From NCBI RefSeq assembly GCF_020745735.1, contig NC_083439.1, positions 13,096,596 to 13,160,595 on the forward strand: DNA of 64,000 nucleotides, written 5' to 3'. Within the stretch, counting starts at the first letter, position 1. Each line of letters opens with the position of its first letter. Shown here one piece after another: positions 824 through 62,490 of this stretch. A model generated the notes under the pieces. The model had not been told where the DNA came from. It saw only the letters and a program-made list of their open reading frames with translations, and searched no databases. The DNA is from Hemiscyllium ocellatum (taxonomy: Eukaryota). A program made the position numbers and the translations under genes.

Positions 824-3800
824 ATCTTGTCGCATTATCCTCCAGGCTTTAATTGTATTTAATACTATAGGGTTTTTACAGTGGTCCATAATAGCTCTCA
901 TCTTGTCCATAAATAAAATATTGATGAGGGGACATTTTGCTTGGGAGGGCTCAATATCTAACCAGATTGATTGTGGGTCACAAGAAACCCAGTCAGCTAC
1001 ATAAGATAATAGAGAGTTCAACTGATACATCCTAAAATCTGGAAAGTCCAGTCCTCTCCTTGCTTATGGGAGCTGCAGCTTTTCTAATTTGATAAGGGGC
1101 TCCAAATAAAGGAGCCGAGCCAGCCGTAGAGCTTACGCAACGCCTGTCTCGGGAGCATCAGGGGGAGCATTCCCATAGGATAGAGAAGACGAGGTAGAAT
1201 ATTCATCTTAACTAGGGCTACTCTGCCTAACCAGGATATTGGGAGATCGCCCCAGTCTTGAAGGTCCTGTCTTATTTTCTCTAATAAGTTCACAAAATTA
1301 GCTTTATACAGCTGACCACATACTGGGGTGATAGAAATACCTAGGTACAGAAAACCTCTTGGTGACCACAGAAAGGGAAAGGAAGATCCGTCCAGTAAAT
1401 TGGATACACTGGCAAGACCTCCAAAAGGCACAGCCTCAGATTTTACAAAATTGATTTTGTAGCCTGAGAACATCCCAAATAAATTGATCACTTGGATTAG
1501 ATGGGACATGGATATCAAAGGATCACTTAAGAAGAAGAGGACATCATCCGCATATAGTGTGATTTTATGTTTGCCCGATCCAACCCTCGGAGCCGTTATG
1601 TTAGGGTCAGTACGTGTAGTTTCTGCCAGTGGTTCAATCACTAGCGTGAATAATAATGGTGAAAGAGGACATCCCTGACGACAACCCTTGCCAACACTAA
1701 AGCTATCTGAACTTAAACCATTGGTGATCATCGCTGCTTTGGGATCATTATATAATACTGAAACCCATTTAGTAAGTACCTCGCAGACACCGAACCTTTC
1801 CAGTATATAAAAAAGATGTGGCCATTCTACCTGATCAAATGCCTTCTCTGTGTCCAAGGAGACAGCTAAATCCGGTATTGTTCCCTGTTAACAGGCTTGT
1901 ATCATATTTAAGATCCTTCTAATATTATTAGTGGACCTGCATCCCTTTATAAACCTTGTCTGGTCCTCTTTTATGATGTATGGTAAGACCCTCACCAATC
2001 TTAATGCTAACATTTTAGAAAGAATTTTGAAATCCACATTTAGTAAGGATATGGATCTATATGATGAGCAATCTTCTGGGGCCTTTTCCTTTTTAAGAAT
2101 AAGAGAGACGTTTGCTTCTCTCAATGAAGGCAGGAAGCAGCCCTGACTGTGTGAATAATTATACATATTTATGAGTGGCCCGGCCAGTTCCACTATAAAT
2201 TCTTTATAGAACTCAACCTGGAAGCCATCTGATCCAGGCACTTTGCCACTCTGAAGCACATTGAGTATTTCCTGGGTTGTCAGGGGGGCATTCTAGATCA
2301 ACACCTGCTCCGTGGTTAAGCCCAGGAGGGCCAAATCTTTAAAGAAGGATTCCATCTTCTCAGCTCTATCCTCACAGTCCTGCAATTTGTACAGAACTTT
2401 CTAAAGGCTGTATTGATCTTTTTATGATCACAAGTCAGGGTACCAGCACTTTCTCTAATGGACGTAATGGCTTGAAGAGCCTTTTTCTTTCGAGTAAGAT
2501 ATGTTAGGTATCTGCCAGGCTTGTCGCCATATTCAAATAATCTTTGTTTTGCGAATAATATTTCCCTCTTTGCTGTTTGAGTAAGTGTGGTATTCAAGGC
2601 TGCCCTAAGGGCTATGATCCTTTGTAGCTTAGTAATGGAAGGCCTGTTAAGATATGCTGTCTCAGCTGCTTTCAAGTGAGCTTCGAGCAGGCGCTGTTGC
2701 TCTCCCTTTTGTCTTTTCTGGGTCACAGAATATGAGATGACCAAGTCTCATGCGTATTCCTTAGTGGTCTCCCACATAATTGACGGGTTACTGGCCGTAC
2801 CTGAATTAATTTCCCAGAAGGTTTTGAATTCCTGTGAAAATTACTTTATAAATTCGCTATCCTTCAATAAGAAGGGATCCATACGCCAATGTCGGGGGCC
2901 TATCCCATCATTCCTAATCTTGACTTCCATATATATTGCGGCATGATCAGAAATAGCTGTATTACCTATTTTACAAGACAGTATGGGTTTAGGGGGCAAA
3001 AAACATATCAATTCTGGTATGGCATTGTGTGGGTTAGAGTAGAAAGTAAAGTCTCTACCCTGGGGGTGAAGGCACCTCCATACATCTAGTCCTAGCTCCT
3101 TATTCAGATCCACCAGTTGTCTAGATCTCAGAGATATACCTGTAGTTCTCTTCGGTATCCTATCTGTCTTTGGGTCCATAATACAGTTAAAATCTCCTCC
3201 TGTAATTGTCTGGCAGACTCCAAAAGCAATCAACTTAAAGAACGCTTCCATTACAAATTTAAAGGGATGCGCCGGGGGGCAATAAAGATTCAAAATTCCA
3301 TATTCCTCTCCATGTATTAGGGCTTTGTTCAATATATACCGTCCAGATCTTCTTTTATCTGGCTCAACATTTGGAAAGGAAGATTCTTCCAAATAAGAAT
3401 GGCTACTCCCCTATGTTTGAACTGAAAGATGACAAAAAAGCCTGATCAAATCCACCCTGTTGTAGTTTTAAATGTTCTTTGTCAAGTAGATGTGTCTCCT
3501 GTAAGAGAGCTATATCGACCCTTTCCTTTTTGAGACTTGATAATTTCTTTTTCCTTTTGATTGGTGAATTACTCCCCTTGACATTCGTCCAGGCAAGCCC
3601 AAGTCCAGGTGCCATGATCATCCAGGCAAGCCCAAGACCTCACAGGAAGAAGAACCCCACTCAGAAAATCTTGAATAGAGACCATAGGAAATACACAAAT
3701 ACAAAAATTCTTTAAAACATTTAAACCAACACAATTAAAAGCTATTCCTAAGTTTAAAAAAGTGCAAAACATATTTGAAAGGAGACTTTCCCCCTTGCTC

Positions 3801-14045: not shown

Positions 14046-15824
14046 AAGCTGGCTAGATTTAACCATGTTACGTTAAACTTCGGTGAAGTGGGGTAATGGC
14101 CCCTTTTTATAATCCTCTCTCAATTGCAAGAAATAGCTCTTAACATTTCCCTTTTTAACATGTAGCTAAAATGAAGGAGAGCCTTTGAGTTTTCATATGT
14201 TGATGAGAGAGTCAGAGTCTAGTCTAGTTTGATATGCTGTGATGTAACATTGCTCACATTCTGGTCATTATGATCAGTCACATTCATGACATCATCACAA
14301 ATTTGCTCCAGTGTCCAAAGCCCTTACACATCAGGAGGGATTTTCCATCATGCCTCCAACTAACTTTGAGAGACTTTCGTAAAGTCCGCTGCTATTTTCA
14401 TTGTAATATGCATTGAGAATAACTTGCAAAGTCACCACAATAATCACATTTTCTCATGAGGATTGGACAAACTCTTTAAACTCTGCCTCTAGAGGTTTGG
14501 ATTGTTTGACTGAAATGCTCTAAAGTAAACAATAGCAAGGTGGATCTTGAGAATTCAAATATAATATCTATTCTCATCAGCTACACATCTGCTCTTAGTT
14601 CAATAATCTCAATATTTGTGTCTGGGCTCATATAGAAATGGATGAGTTCAGGAACTTCTATCCCTGTTGCCTCTTGCGCTGTTACAGAAACTGCTGTCCC
14701 TGCTCTCTCCTGCACATATGACTGCACTAATGACTTGTACAATCGCTTTCTTCATTTGGTAGAGCTGAATGCATGACTGGCATGAGCAGTAGGTCACAAA
14801 CATGTTGCTGTACACTCTATTTGTGTCACAATGTTATGTATTAAAAAGATCATTAAAATATACAAAGGAGTCTGTTAAATCAGAGCGATCAACAATTCTG
14901 CGGAAGTCTGAGAAAACAGAAAGGGTTAATTATAAGAAACATTCATTCTGTCAAAACAGGGCTATAAGGACAAAAAAACTTTTACAGTTTGCATCTGTTT
15001 CCCAACAATAGTCAAACCTAGAATCATTCAGGCTTGTCAGGGTTAAAGAGATGTCAGGTTTATTGATCATGATAAAAACTGCAAGTTCTTATTGATTGAT
15101 TTAAGAATGCTTAAAACTTTCTAATTTAGATTATATTATTATATAAGAAATGTTACCATAGAATTTGTCTACCTTATCTTTTTCAGCTTACGCCTTAATT
15201 GGGAATTGAGAATGTAATTTTGACTGGGCGATATAAGCCACATGTAGACATCTGGTTCCTCTCTCCTCACAGTCAATAACTTCTGCTTGGTTTTCCTGAT
15301 GTTTCTTCCATTAAAATGTTCCATTATTTATATCTGTTGCAACTAATTTATAATGTTTCTGTTAAGCCTACTGATCATTACTAAATAATTAAATTACAGT
15401 GTGATGTGGTTATGTAGAGCAATATAGTTAGGCAGGTAGATACTGGATGTTCTAAGATAGAGTCAACTGTTCAGCAGTTCACTTTTGGAGACATCCCTAG
15501 AGTGGGAAGGGCAGGATCAAGTTAGCATGGTTCATTTTGGAACCAAAAGCCGAGGTAGAACTCCAACATATCCTTCCAACAAAGCTTCATTTAATGTCCA
15601 AATTAAAACATAGAAAGTGATAATCGCTGGATTGTTGGCCAAATCAAATTAAATTGGCATAAGACCATGCAGATTAGAGAGTTAAATATGTGCCTGAAAG
15701 TGTTGCGTGGAAGAAGGGATTTTGATTGGTAAAGCACTGAAACACATATTGGGAAGAATCAACTGTTCTTTTAGAATGGAATCCACTAAAATTGAGCTGG
15801 GATCAGGATCTAGGGCTTTAAAGT

Positions 15825-23083: not shown

Positions 23084-26000
23084 TACAAAAAACAAAGAAA
23101 ATTTACAGCACAGGAACAGGCCCTTCAGCCCTCCAAGCCTGAGCCGATCCAAATGTACTGTCTAAACCTGTCGGTCAATTCCTAAGCATCTGTATCCCTC
23201 TGTTCCCCACCTACTCAGGCATTTGAATAGATGCATCTTAAATGAATCTACCATGCCTGTCTCTACCACCTCTGCTGGCAACACATTCCAGGCGCACACC
23301 ACCCTCTGTGTGAAGTACTTGTCACGTGTATCCCCCTTAAACTTTCCACCTCTCACCTTGAAAGCATGACCTCTCATTATTGAATCCTTCGCCCTAGGAA
23401 AAAGCTTGTCTCTATCCACCCTGTCTATACCCTTCATGATTTTGTAAACCTCAATCAAGTCCTCCCTCAATCTCCTTTTTTCTAATGAAAATTAACCTAA
23501 CCTTCTCAACCTCTCTTCATAGCTAGCACCTTCCATACCAGGCACCATCCTCGTAAACCTTCTCTACACCCTCTCCAAAGTGTCCACATCCTTTTGGTAA
23601 TGTGGTGACCAGAACTGCACACAATATTCTAAATGTGGCCGAACCAATGTCTTGTACAATTTTAATGTGACTTGCCAGCTCTTATACTCAATACCCCGTC
23701 CAATGAAGGCAAGCATACTATATGTCTTCTTGACCACTCTATCCACCTGTGCAACAACCTTCAGGTTACAATGGACCTGCACTCCCAGATCTCTCTGCCT
23801 ATCAACTTTTTTCAAGGCTCTTCTGTTCATTGTATAATTCACTCTAGAATTAGTCTTGCCTAAAAGCATCACCTCACATTTGTCTGGACTGAAAACCATC
23901 TGCCACTTTTCCGACCAACTCTCCAGTCTATCTATATCCTCCTATCTCTGACAGTCTGTTATGTTTTCTGCTACTCCACCAATCTCCGTGTTATCTGCAA
24001 ACTTGCTGATCATACCAACAGTGCCCTCTTCCAGATCATTTATGTATATTACAAACAACAATGGCCCCAACACTGACTCCTGTGGAACTACCACTGGTCA
24101 CCATTCTCCACTTCGAGAAACTCCCTTCAACTACTACTCTCTGTCTCCTGTTGCTCAACCAGCTCTTTATCCACCTAACTAGAACATCCTGCACACCATG
24201 TGACTTCACTTTCTCCATTTGTCTATCATGGAGAACTTTATCAAATGCCTTACTGAAGTCCATGTATATGACATCAACAGCCCTTCCTTCATCTATCAAC
24301 TTGGTCATTTCCTCGAAGAGCTCTAAGTTGGTAAGGCATGATCTCACCCGCACAAAATTAAGTTGCCTATCACTGATAAGCCCATTCTTTTCTAAATATA
24401 ATTAGATCCTATCCCTCAGTACCTTCTCCAGCAACTTTCCCACCACTGACGTCAGGCTCACTGGTCTGTAGTTACCCTGAATATCCCTACTACCCTTGCA
24501 CAGGGGGACAACATAAGCAACCCTCCAGGAATCTGGCACCTCACCTGTATTTAAGGATGCCACAAAGATATCTGTCAGGGCCTCAGCTATTTCTTGCCTC
24601 CCTCAACAACATGGGATAGATCCCATCCAGGCCTAGGGATTTATCCACCTTAATAACCTCTAGCCTACCCAACACATCTTCCCTACTTATGTCAATGTGA
24701 TCCAGACTATTCAAACTTCTATCTCTAATTTTAACATTCATCGTGTTCCTCTCCTCAGTGAACACTTTGCAAAGTAATCATTCAGAATCTCACCCATTCT
24801 CTCAGGTTTGACACTCAGCCTTCCTTCATTATCCTTTAGTGGACCAATCCTTTCTCTTGTTACCTGCTTGTTTCTTGTATAAGAATAAAATGCTTTGGGA
24901 TTCTCCTTAATTCTGCTTGCTAAAGCTATTACTTTAGCCCTCTTGATTCCTCATTTAAGACTAATCTTACTCTTCCGATATTTGTCCAGGGCCTGTTCTG
25001 TTCTTAACTGCCTAGCTGCAAATGTGTTGCTGGTCAAAGCACAGCAGGTTAGGCAGCATCTCAGGAATAGAGAATTCGACGTTTCGAGCATAAGCCCTTC
25101 ATCACTGCCTAGACCTATGTACGCTTCCCTTTTCCTCTTGGCCAGTCGTACAATTTCTCCTGTCATCCACGGTTCACGAATCTTGCTCTTCCTATCCTTT
25201 GACTTCAATGGGACATGCCTATCCTGCACTGTCTTTAACTTATCTTTGAAAGCCTTCCACATCTCAAATGTGGACTTCCCTTCAAATAGCTGTGTCCAAT
25301 CCATATTTCTGAGCTCCTGCCTGATTTTTATATAATTGGCCATGGCCCAGTTTAGTACTCTTCCCTTAGGATCACTCTCTACTTTATTTATGAGTATTCT
25401 AAAACTTACAGAATTGTGGTCAGTGTTCCCAAAGAACTCCCCCACCGCAACTTCTACCACCTGGCCTGGCTCGTTCCCCAGTGCCAGGTCCAATATGGCC
25501 CCTTCCTTCATTGGACTATTGACGTACTGCTCTAGAAAACTCTCCTGGACGTTTCTTACAAATTCTACCCCATCCAGACCTCAGACATTAAGTTTACCCC
25601 AGTCAATGTTGGGAAAATTAAAATCTCCCATCACCACACCCTATTGCCTCTACATCTTTCAATAGTCTATTTACCTATTTGTTCTTCTACCTCACACTCA
25701 TTGTTGGGAAGCTCTAATACAGCCCCAACAATGTAACTGCACCCTTCTTATTTCTCGGCTCTACTCATAATGCTTCACTGTTCAATCCCTCCATAGTATG
25801 TTCCTTTAGCACAGCCATGATATCATCCTTGACCAGCAATGCAACTCCACCCCTCCTTTTACTTCTCTCCCTGTCCTGACTGTGTCTATATCCTGGAACA
25901 CTTAATTCCCAATCATCATGCCCTTCCTTCAACCAAGTCTCTGTGATTGCAATAACGTCATACTCCAGGCACCAATCCAAGCCCTAAGTTCGCCTGCCTT

Positions 26001-27679: not shown

Positions 27680-28005
27680 CAAGTTAATGTGCCCACCCCA
27701 ACTCTTCCATAAAATATGCTAAATCACCATTTCTCCTCTCAAATTTATGCTGTGGCAATAAATTATCTGTAAAGAGTTTGACTACACACTAAATTACAGC
27801 AGTACTTCCTATGAAAGTAGAAAAATTCAAAACTTGAGACACAAGCAGTTAATTCTCAAGACAAATTAACAATAAACCGTCCACCACCAAAACCGGTTGG
27901 TAGCATACCAAGCAAATACTGTGCATGGTCAACCACATAAGGATTAATATTGCACAATCACAAATTCAAGGATATATATATATACCAGCTGTTTAACGTG
28001 ACTGT
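27680..28005 (+). promoter_or_regulatory. Putative promoter of UGT gene 1 (liver/gut-type motifs)
   Basis: GTTAAT HNF1 half-site 27848-27853, FOXA-like AGCAAATA 27911-27918, C/EBP ATTGCACAAT 27949-27958, TATATA 27973-27984. Non-repeat sequence with a paralogue at 34570-35330. Confidence 0.6.
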
Positions 28006-28079
28006 AGTCTTTGCTTTATTTGCAGTCTCAGGTTCCTGGAGTAGAAGACTTGCGGCTTTGTTTGATTTCTGCCTTATCA
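28005..28079 (+). other. Putative non-coding 5' exon of UGT gene 1 (start uncertain, 28005-28026)
   Basis: Ends TTATCA/GTAAGT (donor 28080); same ending at 35410/35411; matching acceptor at 29513-29514. Confidence 0.6.
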
Positions 28080-28129
28080 GTAAGTAGAAGTTTGTAATGT
28101 CATGACAAAATGTTTGATAATCCAGGTAA

Positions 28130-28270
28130 AATCATCATAGTCTTACCAGAGTGAAGCACTGCTCTCCCATTAGAGAGAGCCGACTGGTGTTGATTAAATC
28201 TGAAGTGCAGTACATCTCAGGCAAGGGGAAAGGTTGAGTAGGAGAGTCCCTCATGGTAACCCCAGCCTTA
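28130..28270 (-). mobile_element. Short SINE fragment (family also at 37975-38100 and 53315-53510)
   Basis: ctgctctcccattagagagag..ctcaggcaagggga..catggtaacc shared among the three copies; the 53315 copy carries a B-box-like ggaattgaatcc. Confidence 0.65.
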
Positions 28271-29440: not shown

Positions 29441-29499
29441 TTACTGATGCTTATTTATTTGTCTCTAGATATTCCAATTTATGTTATCAATATTTCTAT

Positions 29500-29519
29500 T
29501 CAATTCTCCAATAGGATCT
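29500..29519 (+). promoter_or_regulatory. Splice acceptor of UGT gene 1 coding exon (exon starts 29515)
   Basis: tcaattctccaatag/GATCT, conserved in front of all three ORFs. Confidence 0.85.
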
Positions 29520-29536
29520 GACTGTTTCATCCGAAT

Positions 29537-31147
29537 ATGAAGTGTCCTAATTGGAAGAGTAGATTTGAAGTTGCGTCTGTTCTTAGTATCATAATCATCA
29601 TGTCTTGTTCAGTAACCCAGGCAGCTAATATATTGGTTGTGCCTGCTGATGCAAGTCATTGGATCAATATGAAAATTCTAATGGAAGAACTGAAAAATCA
29701 TGGGCACAACCTCACTGTGCTTTATTTCTCAACATCTTGGTTTATCGATGCAAGGCCTGATTTATATCAATCCATGGTCTTAGAACTTCAGCAAAACTTT
29801 AAAGTTACAAGTGAAGATATTTTACAAACCTTTGTACAAAGGTCGTTAGATGTTTTACAGAATAGTTCAACGCCATGGAGTTTTCTCAAGTCTCAGTACA
29901 AACTAATGTCTTTTATACACAGCTGTCATAGTTATTTTCAACAGCTTAGCATCACAACATTTGAAAACAAAAGTTTGTTAAAACAGTTTGAAAATGAACA
30001 CTTTAATTTAGTACTTGCAGATCCTGTTTTTCCCTTAGGTTCAATGCTTGCTTATTATTTAAAACTCCCTTTGGTGCATAATGCACGTTGGCTCATCAGT
30101 GGAGAAGCTCATTTTCTCTTCGCCCCTTCTCCATTATCTTATATCCCAGTGCCAGGTTCACAATTGACAGACAAAATGTATTTTTTCCAAAGAACAAAAA
30201 ATGTCATCTTAAGTCTTTTTCTTCTATCTATAACAGAATTCCTGACTCACCCCAAATATAATGATCTCTGCCATCACTACCTAGGCCCAGACATAGACGT
30301 TGAGACTGTTCTTCTCAGTGCAGATGTGTGGCTGATGAGAGTAGATTTTATATTTGATTTCCCGAGACCCACCATGCCAAATATTGTTTATATTGGAGGA
30401 TTCCAGTGTAAACCATCTAAACCTCTAGAGGCAGAGTTTGAGGAGTTTGTCCAGTCCTCAGGGGAACATGGGATTATTGTCATGTCTTTGGGGTCCATGG
30501 TCAGTTCTTTGTCAATGCATATTACAATGCAAATAGCAGAAGCCCTTGCTCAAGTACCTCAGAAGGTTATCTGGAAACACAATGGAGAGATCCCTCCCAA
30601 CATAGGAAATAATACACTACTGGCAAAATGGATCCCTCAGAATGATCTACTAGGGCACCCAAAGACACGAGCCTTCATTGCCCATGGTGGCACCAATGGG
30701 CTTTATGAAGCCATCTATCATGGGGTGCCAGTAGTTGGCATACCTCTATTTTATGACCAGTTTGATAATTTACTCAGACTTGAAATTCGAGGTGCAGCAA
30801 CAGTGATTGATATCTCCACCATGCAGTCAACAGATCTATTGCAGGCACTTAATGATATTATACATAACACATCTTATTGGGAGAACATGCAGAAACTCTC
30901 AGCTCTCCACAGAGGCCAACCAGAGACTCCAATGGAGAGAGCTATTTTCTGGATTGAGTATGTAGCCCGACACAAAGGGGCGCCACATTTGCGCCCAGAG
31001 TCTTATAGACTTCCTTGGTATGTTTACTATTGTGTAGATGTGATGATCTTTCTATTGTTACTGTTCCTCATGCTTCCAATATTGGTAGTTATACTGATCA
31101 AGAAATTGTGTAACATTGCTTGGCAAGAGAAACAAAAAAATCTGTGA
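29537..31147 (+). CDS. UDP-glucuronosyltransferase, single coding exon (UGT5-like), 536 aa
   Basis: Signal peptide, catalytic SHW His, LADP Asp, UGT signature WIPQNDLLGHPKTRAFIAHGGTNGLYEAIYHGVPVVGIPLFYDQ, C-terminal TM helix, KQKNL KxKxx ER-retrieval motif; intact ORF. Confidence 0.97.
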   Translation: MKCPNWKSRFEVASVLSIIIIMSCSVTQAANILVVPADASHWINMKILMEELKNHGHNLTVLYFSTSWFIDARPDLYQSMVLELQQNFKVTSEDILQTFVQRSLDVLQNSSTPWSFLKSQYKLMSFIHSCHSYFQQLSITTFENKSLLKQFENEHFNLVLADPVFPLGSMLAYYLKLPLVHNARWLISGEAHFLFAPSPLSYIPVPGSQLTDKMYFFQRTKNVILSLFLLSITEFLTHPKYNDLCHHYLGPDIDVETVLLSADVWLMRVDFIFDFPRPTMPNIVYIGGFQCKPSKPLEAEFEEFVQSSGEHGIIVMSLGSMVSSLSMHITMQIAEALAQVPQKVIWKHNGEIPPNIGNNTLLAKWIPQNDLLGHPKTRAFIAHGGTNGLYEAIYHGVPVVGIPLFYDQFDNLLRLEIRGAATVIDISTMQSTDLLQALNDIIHNTSYWENMQKLSALHRGQPETPMERAIFWIEYVARHKGAPHLRPESYRLPWYVYYCVDVMIFLLLLFLMLPILVVILIKKLCNIAWQEKQKNL

Positions 31148-35621: not shown

Positions 35622-37969
35622 CTGAAGGGGAAGGGTGAGCAGCCAGAAATCGTGGTACATATTGACACCAATGATATAGCCAGGAAAGGGATTGAGGAGC
35701 TTAAAAGTGACTACAGAGAGCTAGGTTGGAAGCTGAAGAGCAGGGCAAGTAGAGGGTGTTCTCAGGTTTGCTACCGGTGCCATGAGATAGTGAGGTGAGG
35801 AACAGGCAGCAAGCGCAACTGGTGCAGGAGGGAGGGCTTCAGATATTTAGACCATTAGGATGCCTTCTGGGGAAGGTGGGACCTGTACATGAAGGACAGG
35901 TTGCATCTGAATTGAGAAGCACAAATGTCCTAGATTGGAGATTTGCTCCTATGGTTCAGGAGGATTTACGCTAGTTTAGCAGGGAAGTGGGAACCAGAGC
36001 TACGTATCTGAGAGGGGGTAGTTAGATATGGGGCAGTGACAGATGTAGTGAATCTATCAGGAAGGTTATTCATGTGCTGGAACAAAGGGATCGGTTAAAG
36101 TGTGTCTGCTTTAATGCAAGGAGTGTCAGAAATAAGAGTGATAAACTTAGAGCATGGATCGGTTCTTGTGACTGCGATGTTGTTGCCATAACAGAGACGT
36201 GGGTTTCACAGGGGTGGGAATGGTTGCTAGATGTTCCAGGGTTTAGAATGTTTAAAAAGAATGGGGAGGGTGGAGAAAGAGGAGGGGGTGTAGCATTGCT
36301 AATCAGAGAGTGCATCACGAAGGAAAGGGACCTTATTGTGAATGAAAACTTTGAGGAGCTGGGAAACAGGCTTGAACAGATCAAGATTGATGAATCTGAT
36401 GTGTTGGAAATTTTGGCAAACATTAAGATTATTAAGTCCCCAGGGCCAGACCAGATTTATCCTAGATTGCTCTGGGAAGCGGGAAAGGAGGTTGCTAAGC
36501 CGCAGGCAAAGATCCTTGCTTCCTCACCCTCCATGGGAATTTTATCAGAGGATTGGAGGGAGGCGAATGTTCTTCCTCTTTTTAAAAAGGGAAACAGGGA
36601 AATCCCTGGCATTTGCAGACCAGTCAGTCTTACATGTGTGGTCAACAATGTTTTGGAAAGAATTCTGAGGGATAGGATTTATGACTATTTGGAAAAGCAT
36701 AGCGTGATTACATACAGTCAGCATGGCTTTGTGAGGGGCAGGTCATGCCTCACAAATCTTAGTGAGTTATTTGAGGTGGTGATGAGACAGGTCAACAAAG
36801 GTTGAAGAGTGGATGTCGTGTATATGGACTTCAACATGGCATTTGATAAGGTTCCCCATGGTAGGCTCATTCATAAATTCAGGAGGTGTGGGATACAGGC
36901 AGATTTGGCTGTCTGGATTCAGAATTGGTTGGCTGACAGAAGGCAGAGAGTGGTTGTAGATGGAAAGTATTCTGCCTGGAGGTCAGTAGTGAGTGGTGTC
37001 TCACAGGGCTCTGTTCTTGGTCCTCTGATCTTTGTAGTTTTTATAAATGATTTGGATGAGGAGGTTGATAGGTCTGTTAGTAAATTTGCCAATTTGCAAA
37101 GGTGGGAGGTGCAGTTGATAGGATTGAGGACATTGCAGGCTGCAGCATGACATGGACAGGATGCAGAGCTTGGCTGAGAAATGGCAGATGGAGTTCAACC
37201 TGGATAAATGTGAAGTGATGTATTTTGGAAAGTCGAACATGAATGCTGAACATAACGTTAACAACAGGATTCTTGGCAGAGTGGAGGAGCAGAGGGACCT
37301 TGGTGTTCAAGTGCTCAAAGTTACCACCAGAGTGGATAGGGTTGTTACAAAAGCATGTAGTGTTTTGGTTTTCATTAACAGGGGGATCGAGTTTAAGAGC
37401 TGTAAGATTTTGCTGCAGATCTACAAGTCCCTGGTGAGACCACACTTAGAATATTGTGTCCAGGTCTGGCCGCCTATTGTAGGAAAGATATGGAAGTTTT
37501 GGAGATGGTGCAAAGAAGGTTCACCAGAATACTACCTGGACTGAAGGGCTTATCTTATGAAGAAAGGTTGACTAAGCTCGGACTTTTCTCTCTGGAGAGA
37601 AGGAGGAAGACAGGTGACCTGATCGAGGTATACAAGGTAATGAGAGGCATGGATAGAGTCAATAGCTAGAGACTTTTCCCCAGGGCAAGATTGACTGGCA
37701 CGAGGGATCATAGTTTTAAGATTTTAAGAGGAAGGTATAGAGGAGACATCAGAGGTAGGTTCTTTACTCAGAGAGTTGTGAATGTGTTGCCAGTAGTGGT
37801 GGTGGAAGCAGAGTCATTAGGGACATTAAGAGATTGCTGAATATGCACATGGACAGCAGTGAATTAAGGGGTGTGTACATTAAGTTATTTTATTTTAGAT
37901 TAGGAATAATCCTCTGCACAACATAATGGGCCAAACGGCCTGTCCTGTGCTGTACTTTTCTATGTTCTA
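35622..37969 (+). mobile_element. CR1 LINE with internal deletion (EN joined to pre-RT near 36315)
   Basis: CFNARSVRNK, AITETW, GGGVALL then directly KSPGPDQIYPRLL, AFDKVPH, QGSVLGP; tail ttctatgttcta. Confidence 0.9.
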
Positions 37970-44588: not shown

Positions 44589-44690
44589 TTATTGTAAGAC
44601 AGGGAAGGTTCAGAGAGCCAATTGCCCTAGGTTTGCTTGTATGTTTTAAGTCATGTTTTTAAATTTATGCTGTATTGTCAATATTTATCT

Positions 44691-44710
44691 TCAATTCTCC
44701 AACAGGATCT
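44691..44710 (+). promoter_or_regulatory. Splice acceptor of UGT gene 2 coding exon (exon starts 44706)
   Basis: tcaattctccaacag/GATCT. Confidence 0.85.
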
Positions 44711-44730
44711 GGAAATTCCTTGCTCTTGAA

Positions 44731-46344
44731 ATGGATCATTTTGCATGGAAAAGAGGGTTCCATGTTGCATGCACTCTTAGTTTCTTCATTGCCCTGTCTT
44801 ATCCAATTACCCAGGGAGCTGATATATTGGTTGTCCCTGTTGATGGAAGTCATTGGGTCAATATGAGAATTCTAATAGAAGAGCTGAAACGTTATGGGCA
44901 CAATATCACTGTGCTTTATTCTTCAGGATCTATGTACATCAAAGAGCAGCCTGATCTATATCAAACCATCGCAGTTGAAGTGCAAGGATTCGTTGACAGA
45001 AATATGAGCAAAGACATTCTGCAAAATTTAGTTCAAAACACACTAGAAACCTTAAAATTTGATTGGACACTATGGAGATCTGTTAAGTTCCAGTATGAAA
45101 TGATGTCTTTTGTTCATGCCTTTCACTCTTGGGCACTACAGCTAAATTTTGCAATTTATGAAAGCAAGGATTTGTTGAAACAACTTGAAAATGCACATTT
45201 TGACTTAATATTGACTGATCCTGCTTTACCTACAGGTCCAATGCTTGCTTATTATTTAAAACTTCCCCTGGTATATAATGTTCGATGGCTCAGCATTGGA
45301 GAAGCTCATTGTCTCTTAGCCCCATCACCACTGTCCTATATCCCAACCCTTGGTTCCAGATTGACAGATAAAATGAGTTTACTCCAAAGGACAAAAAACA
45401 TCATCTTTTATCTGTTTCAACTCTCCAATTTTAAATTTCTAATTGAGCCTATGTACAATGATTTCTGCCATCGCTATCTGGGCCCAGACACAGACATTGA
45501 GACTGTTCTCCTAAGGGCCGATGTGTTGCTGATGAGAGTAGATTTTATATTTGAATTCCCGAGACCCACCATGCCCAATATTGTTTATATTGGTGGATTC
45601 CAGTGTAAACCACCCAAACCTCTAGAGGCAGAGTTTGAAGAATTTGTCCAGTCCTCAGGAGAACATGGGATTATTGTCATGTCAATGGGGACTGTTATCA
45701 ACTCTTTGCCAATGCATATTGCAATGCAAATAGCAGAGGCCTTTGCTCAAGTGCCTCAGAAGGTTATCTGGAAACATAATGGAAAGACCCCTCCCAACAT
45801 TGGAAATAATACACTACTGGCAAAGTGGATCCCTCAGAATGATCTACTAGGACACCCCAAAACACGAGCCTTCGTTGCTCATGGTGGCACCAATGGAGTT
45901 TATGAAGCCATCTATCATGGGGTGCCAGTAGTTGGCATACCTCTGCTTTTTGACCAGTTTGATAATTTACTCAGACTTGAAACCCGAGGTGCAGCAAAAG
46001 TGATGAACATTGCAAACATGCAGTCAACAGATCTACTGCAGGCACTTAATGAGGTTATATATAACACATCTTATCGGGAGAACATACAGAAACTCTCCGC
46101 TCTCCACAGAGACCAACCCGAGTCTCCAATGGAGAGAGCTATTTTCTGGATTGAGTATGTTGCCCGACACAAAGGGGCAGCACATTTACGCTCAACATCT
46201 TACCGACTCCCCTGGTACGTTTACTATTGTGTAGATGTGATGATCTTCCTGTTGGTTGTGCTACTGATGCTTACAATCCTGACAGTTGTACTGATGAAGA
46301 AATGTTGTAACATTGTCTCAAAAATAAAGCTAAAAACACAGTAA
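44731..46344 (+). CDS. UDP-glucuronosyltransferase, single coding exon (UGT5-like), 537 aa
   Basis: True start MDHFAWK aligns with the paralogues; the track start at 44653 is upstream of the acceptor. VVPVDGSHW, LTDP, signature ..GIPLLFDQ, TM helix, KLKTQ KxKxx. Confidence 0.97.
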   Translation: MDHFAWKRGFHVACTLSFFIALSYPITQGADILVVPVDGSHWVNMRILIEELKRYGHNITVLYSSGSMYIKEQPDLYQTIAVEVQGFVDRNMSKDILQNLVQNTLETLKFDWTLWRSVKFQYEMMSFVHAFHSWALQLNFAIYESKDLLKQLENAHFDLILTDPALPTGPMLAYYLKLPLVYNVRWLSIGEAHCLLAPSPLSYIPTLGSRLTDKMSLLQRTKNIIFYLFQLSNFKFLIEPMYNDFCHRYLGPDTDIETVLLRADVLLMRVDFIFEFPRPTMPNIVYIGGFQCKPPKPLEAEFEEFVQSSGEHGIIVMSMGTVINSLPMHIAMQIAEAFAQVPQKVIWKHNGKTPPNIGNNTLLAKWIPQNDLLGHPKTRAFVAHGGTNGVYEAIYHGVPVVGIPLLFDQFDNLLRLETRGAAKVMNIANMQSTDLLQALNEVIYNTSYRENIQKLSALHRDQPESPMERAIFWIEYVARHKGAAHLRSTSYRLPWYVYYCVDVMIFLLVVLLMLTILTVVLMKKCCNIVSKIKLKTQ

Positions 46345-46366
46345 GAGATATATATGTTTGCTCAGA

Positions 46367-46430
46367 AATAAATTTTTATTTTCCAAGTGAAATAAGTCAA
46401 AGCAGCTTTCTTGATAAACAAAGTAATAAA
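46367..46430 (+). terminator. Candidate polyadenylation signals of UGT gene 2
   Basis: AATAAA at 46367-46372 and 46425-46430, the latter followed by a T-rich tract. Confidence 0.45.
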
Positions 46431-46734
46431 TTACAAGCTAATCTTTTTTTGTTTTAGTTGAGGTGAATAGTCAGTATGAGGTCTGCTGTGTAACATTGCA
46501 TTCACTTTCTTAATAACATAACCACAAACACCCAATACATAAAATTCCAAAGTTCTTTTGGGACCATTTCTTTAGATTGGAAAAACTACAAACGGCACTC
46601 CAAATTTTAGAATTAGATTTTATTGTCATTTGTACTCAAGTACAACAATACAGTGTAAAGTGTATAAAATCACGATTCTCTGGCACCATCTTAAAATACA
46701 AAATTAAAACTTAAAAAAAAGGAGAAATGAAAGA

Positions 46735-56629: not shown

Positions 56630-59600
56630 CCTGTCTGGGAGCAGCAGGAGATAGAGCGAAGGTGACGCCGGAACTCAGAGGTTGCTGGGAAGGTAAGGAC
56701 TTAGTATATATTCTTACCTTTGAAGCGATCTTTTACTTGTCCGGGAGTAGTGGGAGGAAGAGCAGAGGTGATGTTGGAGACCAGGAGGTTGCCGGGAAGG
56801 TAAGGACTTAATATATATCTGTGCAGCAGCTAAACCTGAGATACTACATGTTTAGTATTTCCTACCACCTCCCCCCACCCACCCCCCCACCCCCAACCAG
56901 AAGAAAAGAACTCTGGTAAAGTTTTTTCTTTCATATATCTAAGTGCATTGTTTGGTTTTATTTAGTTGATATCAAGCTAAGGCTTACATTGACAGGAGAC
57001 CTCAGACCCATGGCATGTGCCTCTTGCTTGACGTCAACCACATCCCTGACTTGTAAGAAGTGTGTCCAGCTGCAGCTCTTGTTTGACCACATGACGACTC
57101 TGGAGCTGCAGAGTCAGAGGTCTGGATGGGTCAGAATTTGTAAGAAACATCCAAGAGAGTTTTCAAGAGCAATATGTCGATAGTCCAATGAAGGAAGGGG
57201 CCATATTGGACCTGGTGTTTGGGAATGAGCCAGGCCAGGTGGTAGAAGTTGCAGTGGGGGATTTCTTTGGGAATAGTGACCACAATTCTGTAAGTTTTAG
57301 AATATTTGTAGACAAAGATGAGAGTGGTCCTAAGAGAAGAGTACTAAACTGGGCCAAAGCCAAATTATATCAAAATTCGGCAGGACCTGGGAAATGGGGA
57401 TTGGGGGCAGCTAAGTCCACATTTGATGTGTGGGAGGCTTTCAAAGATAGGTTGAATATAGTGGAGGATAGGCATGTCCCTTTGAAAATAAGGGATAGGA
57501 AAGGCAAGATTCATGAACCGTGGATGACAGGAGAAATTGTACGATTAGTCAAGAGGAAAAGAGAAGTGTACATAAGGTCCAGGCAGCTAAGAACAGAATG
57601 GGCCTTGGAGGAATATTGGGAGAGTAGGACCAATCTTAAATGAGGAACCAAGTGGGCTAAAAGGGGTCATAAAATAACTTTAGTGAGCAGAATTAAGGAG
57701 ACTCCCAAGGCCTTGTATTCATATATAAGAAGCAAGAGGGTAATTAGAGAAAGGGTTGGTCCACTAAAGAAGGAAGGATGTGTGGAGAACCTGAGAAAAT
57801 GGGTGAGATTCTCGATAATTACTTTGCATCAGTGTTACATGAGGAGAGGGATTTGATGACTGTTGAGATAAGTGATAGATGTTTGTTTACTGTGGATCAT
57901 GTTGACCTAAGGAGGGAAGATTGGTTGGGTAGGCTAAAGAATATTAAGGTGGACAAATCCCCAGGACCCGATGGAATCTATCCCAGGTTGCTGAGGGAGG
58001 CAAGAGAGGAAATAGCTGGGGCCCTGATAAATATCTTTGGAGCATCCTTAAACACAGGTGAAGTGCCATAGGACTGGAGGGTTGCTAATGTATTCCCCCT
58101 GTCCAAGAAGGGCAGTAGGGATATTCCAGGTAACTACAGACCAGTGAGCCTGACTTCAGTGGTGGGAAAGTTGCCGGAGAAGGTACTGAGGGATAAAATC
58201 TATTTATATTTTGAAAAGAATGGGCATAACAGTGATAGGCAACATGGTTTTGTGTGGGGGATACTGTACCTTACCAACTTAATAGAATTCTTCGAGGAAG
58301 TGGCCAAGTTAGTATATGAAGGAAAGACTGTTGATGTCATATACCTGGACTTTAGTAAGGCGTTTGATAAGATTCCCCATGGTAAACCAATGGAGAAAGT
58401 GAAGTCACATGGTGTGCAGAATGTTCTAGCTAGGTGGATAGAGAACTGGTTGATAAACAGAAGACAGAGAGTAGTAGTTGAAGGAAGTTTCTCGAAATGG
58501 AGAAAGGTGACCAGTGGTGTTCCACAGGGATTAGTGCTGGGGCCACTGTTGTTTGTAATATACAAAATGATTTGGAGGAGGGCATTGGTGGACTGATCAG
58601 TAAGTTTGCAGATGACATGAAGATTGTCAAAGATTGCAAAAAACACAGGGGATTGTCAAAGAAAACAGGAGAATATAGATAGACTGGAGAGTTGGATGGA
58701 GAAGTGGTAGATGGAGTTCAATCCAGGTAGGTGTAAGGTGATGCATTTTAGGAAGTCTAATTCTAGTGTTATGATTTGGAGGTGCCGGTGTTATACTGGG
58801 GTGTACAAAGTTAAAAATCACACAACACCAGGTTATAGTCCAACAGGTTTAATTGGAAGCACACTAGCTTTCAGAGCGCCGCTCCTTCATCAGGTGATTG
58901 TGGAGGAAACAATTCTAAGGCACAGAATTTATAGCAAAAATTTACAGTGTGATGTAACTGAAATTATACATTGAAAAATATCCTGTTTGTCTGTTGAGTC
59001 TTTCATCTGTTCAAATACCATGATAGTTTCACTTCTTTCATGTGTAAATAACAAGACCTTTTTTTAAAAGTTGCATTCTCAGGTTAGCTGTAACAATGGG
59101 TGTTAGCTAGACAATATGGTGGAAGTGTTAGCCCCCGTGTTCTCTGTCTACGCCATGATGTTTAGATTTATTCTAATCTAAAAAGTGAGATAACAGAGTT
59201 TTACATGAATTCATGCAGTTTTTGAGCAAATTACAATGTAACTCTGCAAGTACAAATTCACCTCACAAGATATATATGTACATTTGGGTCTATGTCTGTC
59301 TGTGTATCTGTCTGTCTGGGTTGGGAGTTGTGAATGTGAGAGAGAATGTACGTGTGTGTAGTGAGTGTAGAGTGTCTTAAGTCTGGAAAGGCTGCATGTG
59401 TGAGTGTGGGAGAGTGTGTGCATGTTTGGGGTGGGGGATTGTGAGTGTCTGTGAGAGAGAGTGTATATGTGTGTGCATGAATGTAGAGTGGTCTAAGTGT
59501 CTGAGAGGATGCTTGTGTGAGTGTGGAAGTGTGTGTGTCTGTAAGAGTGTGTGTGAGTGTCTGTGTGCGTGTCTGTGTGTGTGTGTGTGTCTGTGTGTGT

Positions 59601-60745
59601 ATAGTGCAATGGTGGTCACCTGTAATGTGACATGAACCCAAGGTCCCGGTTGAGGCCCTCCCTATGAGTACTGAACTTAGCTATCAACTTCTGCTCGGCC
59701 ACTTTTCGCTGCTGCCTGTCCTGAAGTCTGCCTTGGAGGATGGTCACCTGAAGGTCCGAGGTCGAATTCCTGGACCACTGAAGTGTTCCCCAACTGGGAG
59801 GGAACACTCCTGTCTGTTGATTGTTGTGCGGTGCCCATTCATCCGTTGTTGTAGCCTTTGCTCGGTTTCCCCAATGTACCATGCCTCAGGACATCCTTGC
59901 CTGCAATGTATAAGATAGACAACGTTGGCTGAGTCACATGAGTACCTGCCATGTACAAGGTGGGAGGTGTTCCCACGTGTAAAGGTGGTATCCATGCTCA
60001 CACTCTGACATGTCTTGCAGTGCCTACCATGACAGGGTTGTATGGAGTTGTCCTGTGAGCCGGGCAGCTTGTATATGGCAGGTATTCATGTGACTGGTGG
60101 ATAGAGTGGTCAAGAAGACATATGGTATGCTTGCCTTAATTGGATGGGGTATTGAGTGTAAGAGCTGGCAAGTCATGTTAAAATTGGGCAAGATTTCGAT
60201 TCGGCCGCATTTAGAATACTGTATACAGTTCTGGTTGCCACAATACCAAAAAGATGTGGATGCTTTGGAGAGGGTGCAGAGCAGGTTCAAGAGATGTTGC
60301 CTGGTATGGAAGGTGCTAGCTATGAAGAGAGGTGGAGTAGGTTAGGATTGTTTTCATTAGAAAAAAGGAGATTGAGGGGCGATCTGATTGAGGTTTACAA
60401 AATCATGGAGGGTAGAGACAGGGCGGATAGAGATAGGCTTTTTCCCAGGGTGAAGGATTCAATAATGAGAGGTCATGTGTTCAAGGTGAGAGGTGAAAAG
60501 TTTAAGGGGGATACACGCGGAAAGTACTTCACTCAGAGGGTGATAGGTGCCTGGATCGTGTTGCCAACAGAGGTGGTAGAGACAGGCACAGTAGATTCAT
60601 TTAAGGTGCATCTAGACAGATGCTTGAGTAGGTGGTGAGCAGAGGGATATAGATGCTTAGGAATTGGGCGACAGGTTTAGACAGTAGATTTGGATTGGCT
60701 CAGGCTTAGAGGGCCCGTGGGCTGTAAATTTTCTTTGTTTCTCAT
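56630..60745 (+). mobile_element. CR1 LINE retaining its 5' end, internally deleted, interrupted by Penelope; same subfamily as 23084-26335
   Basis: 5' tandem ~107-bp units, CASC..CKKCVQLQLL ORF1 start, MKEGAILDLVFGNEPGQ, VPQGLVLGP, RGKYFTQRV; tail ctgtaaattttctttg. Confidence 0.92.
58770..60075 (-). mobile_element. Penelope-like element 3' part: GIY-YIG endonuclease, CA-rich microsatellite, family B pseudo-LTR
   Basis: YSCDSANVVYLIHC..YIGET..RMNGHR..VGEHF and RKVAEQKLIAKF..GLNRDLGFMSHY; (TG)-rich 59290-59600; ctgatgaaggagcggcgctctgaaagct on minus strand. Confidence 0.92.
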
Positions 60746-62420: not shown

Positions 62421-62470
62421 ATTCTTATTTTATTATTGCACAGAATCTTATGTTATAACAACATTTCTTT

Positions 62471-62490
62471 TCAATTATCCAACAGGATCC
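62471..62490 (+). promoter_or_regulatory. Splice acceptor of UGT gene 3 coding exon (exon starts 62486)
   Basis: tcaattatccaacag/GATCC. Confidence 0.85.

Follow-up and report, generated by a model that had tools for sequence, protein, structure and literature searches.

How can neighbouring genes keep one half of an enzyme alike while the other half and the surrounding DNA drift apart? The question is raised by three UDP-glycosyltransferase (UGT) genes of Hemiscyllium ocellatum, here called g1, g2 and g3, which lie in tandem and in the same orientation in the window, that is, the whole stretch of 64,000 nucleotides that was analysed (contig NC_083439.1, positions 13,096,596 to 13,160,595). 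A sequence-only reading of this DNA had proposed that recurrent gene conversion keeps a quasi-constant UDP-sugar domain while the substrate domains diversify, converging on the outcome of the shared exons of UGT1A inside single-exon genes.

The first gene, g1 (29537-31147, forward strand), is a complete single-exon UGT with an open reading frame for 536 aa (Pfam UDPGT, E=3e-154). The second, g2 (44731-46344, forward strand), is also a complete single-exon UGT by its open reading frame and Pfam UDPGT match and encodes 537 aa; its start was placed at the methionine that aligns with those of g1 and g3, and a further in-frame ATG lies upstream at 44653. For the single-exon gene g3 (62511-64000, forward strand), 496 of the 534 codons of the open reading frame lie inside the window and the rest past its end; its protein corresponds to P0126 without differences. 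Across residues 31 to ~530, g1-g3 match the Pfam family UDPGT (PF00201) at 487-519 bits (cut-off 19.5; E 1e-146 to 1e-155), and the C-terminal domain structures of human UGT2B7, 2B10, 2B15 and 2B17 align to g1 residues 283-458 with E=1e-64 to 1e-68. By these matches the three proteins are assigned to the UDP-glycosyltransferase superfamily (GT1, GT-B fold). The whole open reading frame sits in one exon, which is a Ugt5 trait: g1 and g2 are uninterrupted over 536 and 537 codons and g3 over the 496 in the window, the orthologous gene of Chiloscyllium plagiosum measures exactly 1611 nt for 536 aa, and the C. punctatum copies are single open reading frames. Among the best non-elasmobranch matches (51-54% identity) are teleost proteins named UGT5 D1, E1 and G1, but many others carry automatic "2C1-like", "2A1-like" or "1-2-like" names. 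Ugt5 genes were found in teleosts and amphibians, in a study that does not mention sharks and reports no conversion among them (PMC2819257, Huang & Wu 2010); like the shark genes, they have their open reading frame in one large exon and some members are clustered. S. canicula P0079 was considered as a multi-exon outgroup for an ancestral intron near residue ~245 and was dropped, its nearest named relatives being Ugt5 themselves.

By its N half, the orthologue of g1 is C. plagiosum P0025 (identity 93% in the N half and 97% in the C half), and g3 has its C. punctatum orthologue at L001:9290-10891, with 94.6% identity at the protein level. The window also holds a UGT relic on the reverse strand (14327-14649), found by tblastn/blastn, with frameshifts, stops and 77% nt identity to g2 and g3. 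Only residues ~243-356 can be recognised in it, and detectable homology begins at the 5' edge of the block described below. Among the RNA runs searched for g2, none holding these genes was found.

In each gene an internal block of ~790 nt stands out, at 30266-31051 in g1 (codons 245-506, LCHHYLGPD to CVDVMIF), 45463-46248 in g2 (LCHxYLGPD to CVDVMIF) and 63234-64000 in g3, where the 3' end falls outside the window, all on the forward strand. It comprises the last part of the N domain, the linker, the entire UDP-sugar-binding domain and the luminal stem, which in g1 amounts to the UDP-sugar-binding C-terminal domain plus ~40 residues on each side. Pairs among g1-g3 agree at 64.7-71.6% of nucleotides in the N half and at 89.4-93.2% in the block, with 85-90% protein identity in the latter, and their dS (Nei-Gojobori) is 0.72-1.31 over codons 1-244 and 0.15-0.31 over codons 245-499. 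The most distant copy is g1, with a block dS of 0.29-0.31 to g2 and g3 (N half 0.86-1.31); g2 stands at 0.15 from g3 and at 0.29 from g1. Three C. punctatum paralogues behave likewise, with dS of 0.90-1.08 in the N half against 0.21-0.32 in the block. The earlier description of these blocks as near-identical even at silent sites was thus too strong, since 7-11% of block nucleotides differ and only codons 381-499 of g2 and g3, with a dS of about 0.03-0.08, come close to it; "quasi-constant" likewise fits the UDP-sugar domain loosely, at 85-90% protein and 89-93% DNA identity.

The orthologous pair formed by g3 and its C. punctatum counterpart served as a control, and its dS is 0.117 in the N half and 0.109 in the block (ratio 1.07). 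Silent divergence is therefore uniform along the open reading frame between orthologues and strongly non-uniform between paralogues, the unevenness for which the sequence-only reading had asked. A local drop in the silent rate within the block is excluded by this equality, and the 4-6 fold fall in paralogue dS and dN cannot be put down to mutation rate or to constraint. Judged by silent sites, the common ancestry of the block is 3-5 times younger than that of the N half. DNA from another species was compared for C. punctatum; beyond it, the pattern is read from protein trees, several rows of which carry putative species names. GC3 decreases from tail to block to N half, and because the tail has the highest value, the raised GC3 of the block is no clean sign of biased conversion.

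The block has edges on both sides. A two-breakpoint likelihood scan of third codon positions places the start of the low-divergence segment at codons 243-264 and its end at codons 482-528, with 2dlnL of 36-62 for the paralogues versus 10.5 for the orthologue control. The difference between paralogue identity within an order and orthologue identity across orders changes sign at residue ~241-250. Beyond the block, the transmembrane (TM) tails (~codons 500-537) have diverged to dS of 0.34-1.4, local alignment finds no similarity between the 3' flanks of the paralogues (z<2 against shuffles), and the 5' flanks have just short patches in common, of up to 62 nt. One short conserved patch lies 20-60 nt upstream of every ATG in g1-g3. 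The homogenised tract is thus bounded on both sides, and the flanks were not transferred along with it; the divergence of N halves, tails and flanks is as originally described. In the deep-time comparison the TM tail does not follow N-half orthology either, so the 3' edge may move.

Trees of 61 elasmobranch proteins were built separately for N halves and C halves. The N-half tree consists of orthogroups that each span sharks and rays (support 98-100), as had been predicted, and on this tree the substrate-binding halves have been diverging since before the shark/ray split. The C-half tree groups Orectolobiformes (96), skates (99), Narcine (99) and Scyliorhinus (84), as well as a core of five Pristis genes (96; all six at 90). 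The incongruence is reciprocal in approximately unbiased (AU) tests. N-half data reject the C-half clades of skates (p=6e-61), Scyliorhinus (p=4e-7) and orectolobiforms (p=1e-120) and the Stegostoma-trio (p=3e-6), and C-half data reject the N-half orthogroups X (p=3e-48) and Z (p=0.007), with a borderline result for Y, the g1 group (p=0.06). At least seven lineages have C-half clusters of their own, and the N/C pattern recurs among the proteins of about 15 species; in these trees sharks, skates, sawfish, stingrays and electric rays each show the discordance independently.

The companion prediction, that C halves group by species, did not hold at that level. They group by order or family, and within Hemiscylliidae a single clade of g1, g2 and g3 is rejected by C-half data (p=4e-5); in the C-half tree, g1 and g3 are each still grouped with their own Chiloscyllium orthologue (98). 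Most of the homogenisation is therefore older than the Hemiscyllium/Chiloscyllium split, and grouping by order and family indicates that conversion is slow or episodic. The earlier idea of recurrent conversion can be kept as to mechanism, but its pace is lower than was implied, most exchange predating the genus split.

Within the block, agreement among the copies is patchy. The proportions of sites at which g1=g2, g1=g3 or g2=g3 vary along it (chi-square p=0.003), which points to several events; the same test in the N half found a homogeneous mix (p=0.32). The 21-mer quoted earlier for g1 and g3 occurs only at 30311 (g1) and 63279 (g3), in line with the patchiness first noticed there. It falls in a candidate tract of exact 58-nt identity between g1 (30300-30357, forward strand) and g3 (63268-63325), and since this tract is also present in the C. 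punctatum g3 orthologue, it predates the genus split. The youngest candidate tract covers codons 381-499 of g2 (45871-46227, forward strand) and g3 (63642-63998), where g2-g3 dS is 0.00-0.08; inside it lies the exact 108-nt identity between 45874-45981 and 63645-63752, which we could confirm. Here the site patterns g2=g3 against C. punctatum, g2=C. punctatum against g3 and g3=C. punctatum against g2 stand at 9:3:8, compared with 12:13:183 in the N half. Differences between the orthologues are marginally clustered in the block (6 in 25 nt, p=0.02; N half p=0.07). The star-like 9:3:8 pattern and this one cluster hint weakly at conversion after the genus split. A Sawyer-type permutation on polymorphic sites gave best values of p=0.001-0.006 uncorrected for 15 pairs, the run in the g1=g3 tract comprising 13-14 concordant sites, and p=0.07 for the g2-g3 tract; on silent sites alone it found no significant run. 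With the test marginal, individual recent tracts are not proven.

Similar C halves that had been collapsed or cross-patched during assembly could in principle imitate homogenisation. The block is indeed repeat-like for short words, and De Bruijn contigs break there. However, contigs from two conspecific individuals in two studies show 0 differences to g2 over 44600-45480 and 46224-46500 and reproduce the g2-specific stretches of the block, again with 0 differences. The three blocks differ mutually at 7-11% of sites, the independently assembled C. punctatum orthologue matches g3 at 96.3% across the block, and the pattern is seen in about 15 species, which together leave an artefact with a negligible probability. 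The check for assembly collapse set by the sequence-only reading thus found none, and independent read-built contigs bear g2 out. A second explanation needs no exchange: constraint or slow mutation confined to the block, through RNA structure, codon usage or exonic regulatory elements, would act together with stronger protein constraint on the donor-binding domain. In all UGTs conservation is concentrated in the C-terminal domain, even in unlinked ray-finned Ugt5 paralogues similarity is ~0.70 between C halves against 0.50 between N halves, and for the g3 orthologue pair dN/dS is 0.17 in the block, somewhat below the 0.26 of the N half. Yet silent divergence between the orthologues is as high in the block as in the N half, the scan of the orthologue pair reveals no low segment of similar strength, and the clustering of C halves by taxon against N-half orthology is beyond the reach of constraint, which we consider very unlikely as the explanation. 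The ray-finned baseline rises from an N-half identity near 0.5 to a C-half identity near 0.70, whereas the elasmobranch arrays have C halves at 0.85-0.95; such an excess was not seen among the sampled ray-finned Ugt5 paralogues, with the Polyodon trio as a possible exception.

Exchange of another kind, unequal crossing-over inside the C half, would join the N half of one gene to the C half of another and change copy number without conversion. It too would yield discordant N and C trees, and a tandem, same-orientation array with relics or pseudogenes (that at 14327-14649 and another on a C. punctatum scaffold, L001:17212-20649) speaks for copy turnover. A crossover product, however, would bring along the tail and 3' flank of the donor, which in g1-g3 are diverged and unalignable, respectively; read-based contigs show sharp edges of the g2 block near 45,450-45,490 and 46,251-46,254, and at 46251-46254 at least three different contig continuations part from the shared sequence at one point. 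Agreement among the copies also switches several times within the block, and N-half orthologues have stayed distinct across orders, against frequent rebuilding of the array by crossing-over. We regard this route as distinctly improbable. The intronless genes could instead be retrocopies of differently spliced mRNAs from a variable/constant cluster, their C halves identical at birth, and the 5' edge of the block (residue ~245) would lie close to the UGT2 exon 1/2 junction, exon 1 being ~721 nt. Retrotransposition has moreover been proposed as the source of Ugt5 open reading frames (PMC2819257). Against this stand the tandem arrangement in one orientation with N-half orthologues kept across orders, the divergence of a TM tail that would have belonged to the constant exons, the mosaic block, and the at least seven separately clustering lineages, which would demand repeated synteny-preserving retrocopying. 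This origin of the similarity is scarcely plausible.

We therefore favour, with a probability of about 85%, region-restricted concerted evolution by interlocus gene conversion in an old tandem array of intronless Ugt5-like genes. The dS contrast, the reciprocal incongruence of the trees and the absence of assembly collapse all support the proposal that conversion is restricted to the C-terminal block. An internal segment, codons ~245-506, would have been repeatedly overwritten from paralogues by non-reciprocal homologous recombination. A hypervariable stretch (residues ~221-243) on one side and the TM tail on the other may be too diverged to pair, in which case tracts would start and resolve inside the block, and homology would then maintain itself there and decay outside; selection against overwriting of the substrate-binding half may contribute. 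The rate would be low, with the last homogenisation of most of the block in g1-g3 probably dating to 1.4-2.9 times the age of the Hemiscyllium/Chiloscyllium split. The longest escape from conversion would be that of g1, and codons 381-499 of g2 and g3 may have been exchanged at about the time of the split.

The constancy of the block may be a by-product of where homology persists, or it may be selected. A stronger form of the second idea, in which block-restricted conversion is a selected substitute for shared constant exons with its 5' edge at an ancestral UGT2-type junction (residue ~245), strikes us as improbable. If true, it would mean that an intronless array without alternative splicing keeps a common donor-binding and oligomerisation module by copying between genes, and that the family itself traces back to transcripts of a variable/constant cluster that had been retrocopied.

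Region-restricted gene conversion is reported, in work by Noonan and colleagues from 2004 that PMC1885805 and PMC2819257 cite, for the variable exons of clustered protocadherins. In both systems large coding units stand in tandem, one part is homogenised and clusters by lineage, and the part that recognises ligands diversifies. The protocadherin variable exons are spliced to constant exons, whereas the shark array consists of complete intronless genes whose converted block is internal and bounded on both sides. The UGT1A and UGT2A loci likewise combine many substrate-binding N halves with a similar UDP-sugar-binding C part in one locus, but they do so by sharing physically identical exons, TM tail included, through alternative splicing (PMC1885805). 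Each shark gene has its own copy of the block, the tail is unshared, and the 5' edge at residue ~245 does not coincide with the end of UGT1 exon 1. The convergence on UGT1A suggested earlier therefore holds for the outcome and remains an analogy, edges and TM tail being different.

Vertebrate UGT clusters are textbook examples of birth-and-death evolution. For the vertebrate Ugt1 and Ugt2 clusters, which were described in these terms, gene conversion was found not to be prevalent (PMC1885805), and the elasmobranch array would be a clear counter-example. Other gene families are known to undergo conversion of this type; in the literature searched we found no report of it in UGTs. For several hundred million years one half of an enzyme would have undergone concerted evolution, with the orthologous identity of the other half preserved across sharks and rays. 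Trees and orthology calls for cartilaginous-fish UGTs are accordingly misleading when taken from whole proteins, and N halves are preferable for orthology. As a natural system, the array could also be used to find out whether conversion tracts end where they do because of a heterology barrier or because of selection; comparative genomics would suffice for this, since genomes of many elasmobranchs are now available at chromosome level. Short-read assemblies are expected to fragment at the block; at g2, the Logan contigs from 45432 to 46263 are broken into fragments 65-240 nt long, and summed word depth is 3-12x higher there.

Three tandem single-exon UDP-glycosyltransferase (UGT) genes lie on the plus strand of the window: g1 at 29537-31147 (536 aa), g2 at 44731-46344 (537 aa, with an in-frame ATG further upstream at 44653) and g3 from 62511, which the window end cuts after 496 codons. 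All three reading frames are uninterrupted, and Pfam UDPGT spans almost all of each in a profile search (487-519 bits each); residues 283-458 of g1 align to solved human UGT2B C-terminal domains. The g1 orthologue of Chiloscyllium plagiosum occupies exactly 1611 nt for 536 aa. Intronless ORFs are the defining feature of the Ugt5 family, which PMC2819257 describes in teleosts and amphibians, and teleost UGT5 D1, E1 and G1 are among the nearest non-elasmobranch proteins (51-54% identity); based on these sequence features, g1-g3 are termed Ugt5-like. The g3 protein is 100% identical to database protein P0126, whereas protein searches gave no 100% match for g1 or g2, so the public annotation of the H. 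ocellatum genome may lack both of these intact ORFs. Upstream of each ATG, a patch of 31-50 nt (29476-29520, 44662-44711 and 62448-62489) is 82-87% conserved among the three genes, and outside it their upstream DNA is unalignable. If non-coding leader exons precede the coding exon here, as they do in Ugt5 genes, a splice acceptor and 5' UTR would be expected at this place, and the patch could represent them. In a low-stringency comparison, the stretch 27680-28130 upstream of g1 had no counterpart upstream of g2 or g3.

From LCHxYLGPD to CVDVMIF (codons ~245-506, hereafter the block), DNA identity among g1-g3 is 89.4-93.2%, compared with 64.7-71.6% in the N half (codons 1-244). Paralogue dS (Nei-Gojobori) is 0.15-0.31 in codons 245-499 versus 0.72-1.31 in codons 1-244, and a likelihood scan of third codon positions with two breakpoints delimits the low-divergence segment at codons 243-264 to 482-528 (2dlnL 36-62). 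The sequence-only reading had described strongly diverged N halves, TM tails and flanks. This description holds: the TM tails diverge again (dS 0.34-1.4), similarity between the 3' flanks does not exceed that of shuffled sequence, and the upstream regions have in common only patches of at most 62 nt. Just upstream of the block, residues 221-240 are hypervariable (paralogue identity 0.34). The exact 108-nt identity it reported between 45874-45981 in g2 and 63645-63752 in g3 was recovered, as was a 21-mer found only in g1 (30311) and g3 (63279), which sits within a 58-nt identity between these genes. Its wording that the block is near-identical even at silent sites is overstated, as only codons 381-499 of g2 and g3 come close.

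Low silent divergence in the block might reflect a locally slow silent clock, and protein constraint is indeed stronger there than in the N half, but only ~1.6-fold, against a 4-6 fold lower paralogue dN. This explanation is rejected by g3 and its C. punctatum orthologue (scaffold L001:9290-10891), which are separated by a dS of 0.117 over the N half and 0.109 over the block, with dN/dS of 0.26 and 0.17, respectively. A breakpoint scan of this pair gave 2dlnL 10.5, nothing like the paralogue signal, so the silent rate is uniform along the gene; the regional dS comparison suggested earlier thus finds non-uniformity between paralogues only. Three C. punctatum paralogues repeat the contrast (dS 0.90-1.08 in the N half, 0.21-0.32 in the block). 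The block copies are alike because their common ancestor is more recent. Unequal crossing-over is an alternative source of a shared block, but it would bring the distal flank along, and here the block has a limit at either end, with diverged tails and unalignable 3' flanks.

Assembly collapse, which the sequence-only reading had named as a possible artefact, was assessed with Logan contigs from two H. ocellatum individuals (two studies) and two related species, mapped on 44600-46500. Same-species single-copy contigs with 0 differences cover 44600-45480 and 46224/46242-46500. Across 45432-46263 the contigs fragment into 65-240-nt pieces and summed word depth is 3-12 times higher, and g2-specific pieces with 0 differences are found there. 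At least three different continuations branch at 46251-46254, indicating that the paralogues have words in common to that point and then their own TM tails. The edges of the common block are sharp (near 45,450-45,490 and 46,251-46,254), and the contig pattern is alike in the two related species. The g2-specific pieces and unique flanks in independent individuals rule out collapse. Both related species have g2 orthologues (N half 4.1-4.4% different); that of relative B carries a 5-nt deletion at 45161 in an N half otherwise 96% identical, and is therefore probably a pseudogene. No g2-type N half was found among annotated Chiloscyllium proteins (best 65%).

An alignment of g1-g3, two ray-finned outgroup proteins and 56 other proteins from elasmobranchs was divided into N half and block, and a tree was built from each (215 and 255 columns, respectively). 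As predicted, N halves group by orthologue, in orthogroups that span sharks and rays, one of which (support 98) unites Scyliorhinus, Stegostoma and Hemiscyllium genes with Amblyraja, Hypanus and Mobula genes. The partner of g1 is C. plagiosum P0025, followed by Stegostoma P0026 and Carcharodon P0022, while g3 groups with C. punctatum P0017 and Stegostoma P0023. The C-half tree clusters by taxon, with clades of Orectolobiformes (15 genes, support 96), skates (99), Narcine (99), Pristis (96 for a core of five genes, 90 for all six) and Scyliorhinus (84). In reciprocal AU tests, C-half clades imposed on the N-half data gave p=6e-61 for skates, 4e-7 for Scyliorhinus, 1e-120 for Orectolobiformes and 3e-6 for a Stegostoma trio; N-half orthogroups imposed on the block data gave p=3e-48 (X), 0.007 (Z) and 0.06 (Y, the g1 group). 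In a sliding comparison, cross-order orthologues are closer than same-order paralogues up to residue ~240, and the relation is reversed from ~241-250 on. Ray-finned Ugt5 paralogues with N-half identity of ~0.5 provide a baseline C-half identity of ~0.70, compared with 0.85-0.95 in elasmobranch arrays.

The predicted grouping of C halves by species breaks down at shallow depth: the block data reject a g1+g2+g3 clade (p=4e-5), and the block tree still joins g1 and g3 to their Chiloscyllium counterparts (support 98). Block paralogue dS is 1.4-2.9 times orthologue dS (0.11) and about equal within and between Hemiscyllium and Chiloscyllium, and most homogenisation is therefore older than the genus split. 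The block of the g1 lineage became independent before Stegostoma split off. Over codons 381-499, g2 and g3 form a star-like trio with C. punctatum g3 (site patterns 9:3:8, versus 12:13:183 in the N half), implying that g2 and g3 exchanged sequence roughly when the genera separated; the evidence for later exchanges is marginal. The claimed patchiness is borne out, since the proportions of g1=g2, g1=g3 and g2=g3 sites shift between bins in the block (p=0.003; permutation 0.0026) and are homogeneous across the N half (p=0.32), which calls for multiple exchanges involving different partners. A Sawyer-type run test was only marginal, and our claim is accordingly one of regional concerted evolution and not a catalogue of single tracts.

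An internal block of ~790 nt has been repeatedly replaced from paralogues, and the N half, tail and flank were not co-replaced. Gene conversion, the mechanism originally proposed, is well supported, at a probability of about 0.85. The hypervariable stretch upstream and the fast-evolving TM tail would act as heterology barriers at the two edges, such that tracts would start and end inside the block and its homology would be self-maintaining; selection against loss of substrate specificity may contribute. The proposed likeness to UGT1A applies to the outcome and not to the anatomy, as the shark block begins near residue 245 and excludes the tail. This start presumably lies close to the exon 1/2 junction of UGT2 rather than to that of UGT1. 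The nearest parallel is the region-restricted conversion reported among protocadherin variable exons. The Ugt1 and Ugt2 clusters have been screened with GENECONV, with conversion not prevalent and evolution by birth and death (PMC1885805), and the Ugt5 account in PMC2819257 includes neither sharks nor conversion among Ugt5 genes; both papers cite the protocadherin case. A full-text literature search, with most subscription journals outside its coverage, gave no report of concerted evolution in elasmobranch UGTs. Conversion is a known evolutionary mechanism, and these genes are a new example of it in a UGT family where its role was thought minor.

The spacers between the UGT genes carry LINE reverse-transcriptase and endonuclease fragments; such ORF fragments lie at 1084-3392 (minus strand), 36074-36805 and 58144-58596 (both plus). 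The spacers also contain an inverted repeat pair of ~2.4 kb (23128-25586 versus 57113-60714) that is 82-88% identical. A decayed short UGT relic on the minus strand (14327-14649), with frameshifts and stops, is recognisable only over residues ~243-356 and matches g2 and g3 at 77% of nucleotides. The 5' edge of the block is precisely where its detectable homology starts, and even permissive tblastn found no N-half remnant. The UGT array extends past g3. Downstream of the g3 orthologue in C. punctatum, a UGT pseudogene (L001:17212-20649) runs over several frames in pieces 40-57% identical to g1-g3. Among the ray-finned paralogues sampled, only three Ugt5-like proteins of the paddlefish Polyodon spathula (P0073, P0077 and P0101) have a comparable C-half excess, with identities of 67-71% over the N halves and 89-91% over the C halves; they may represent the same phenomenon outside elasmobranchs.
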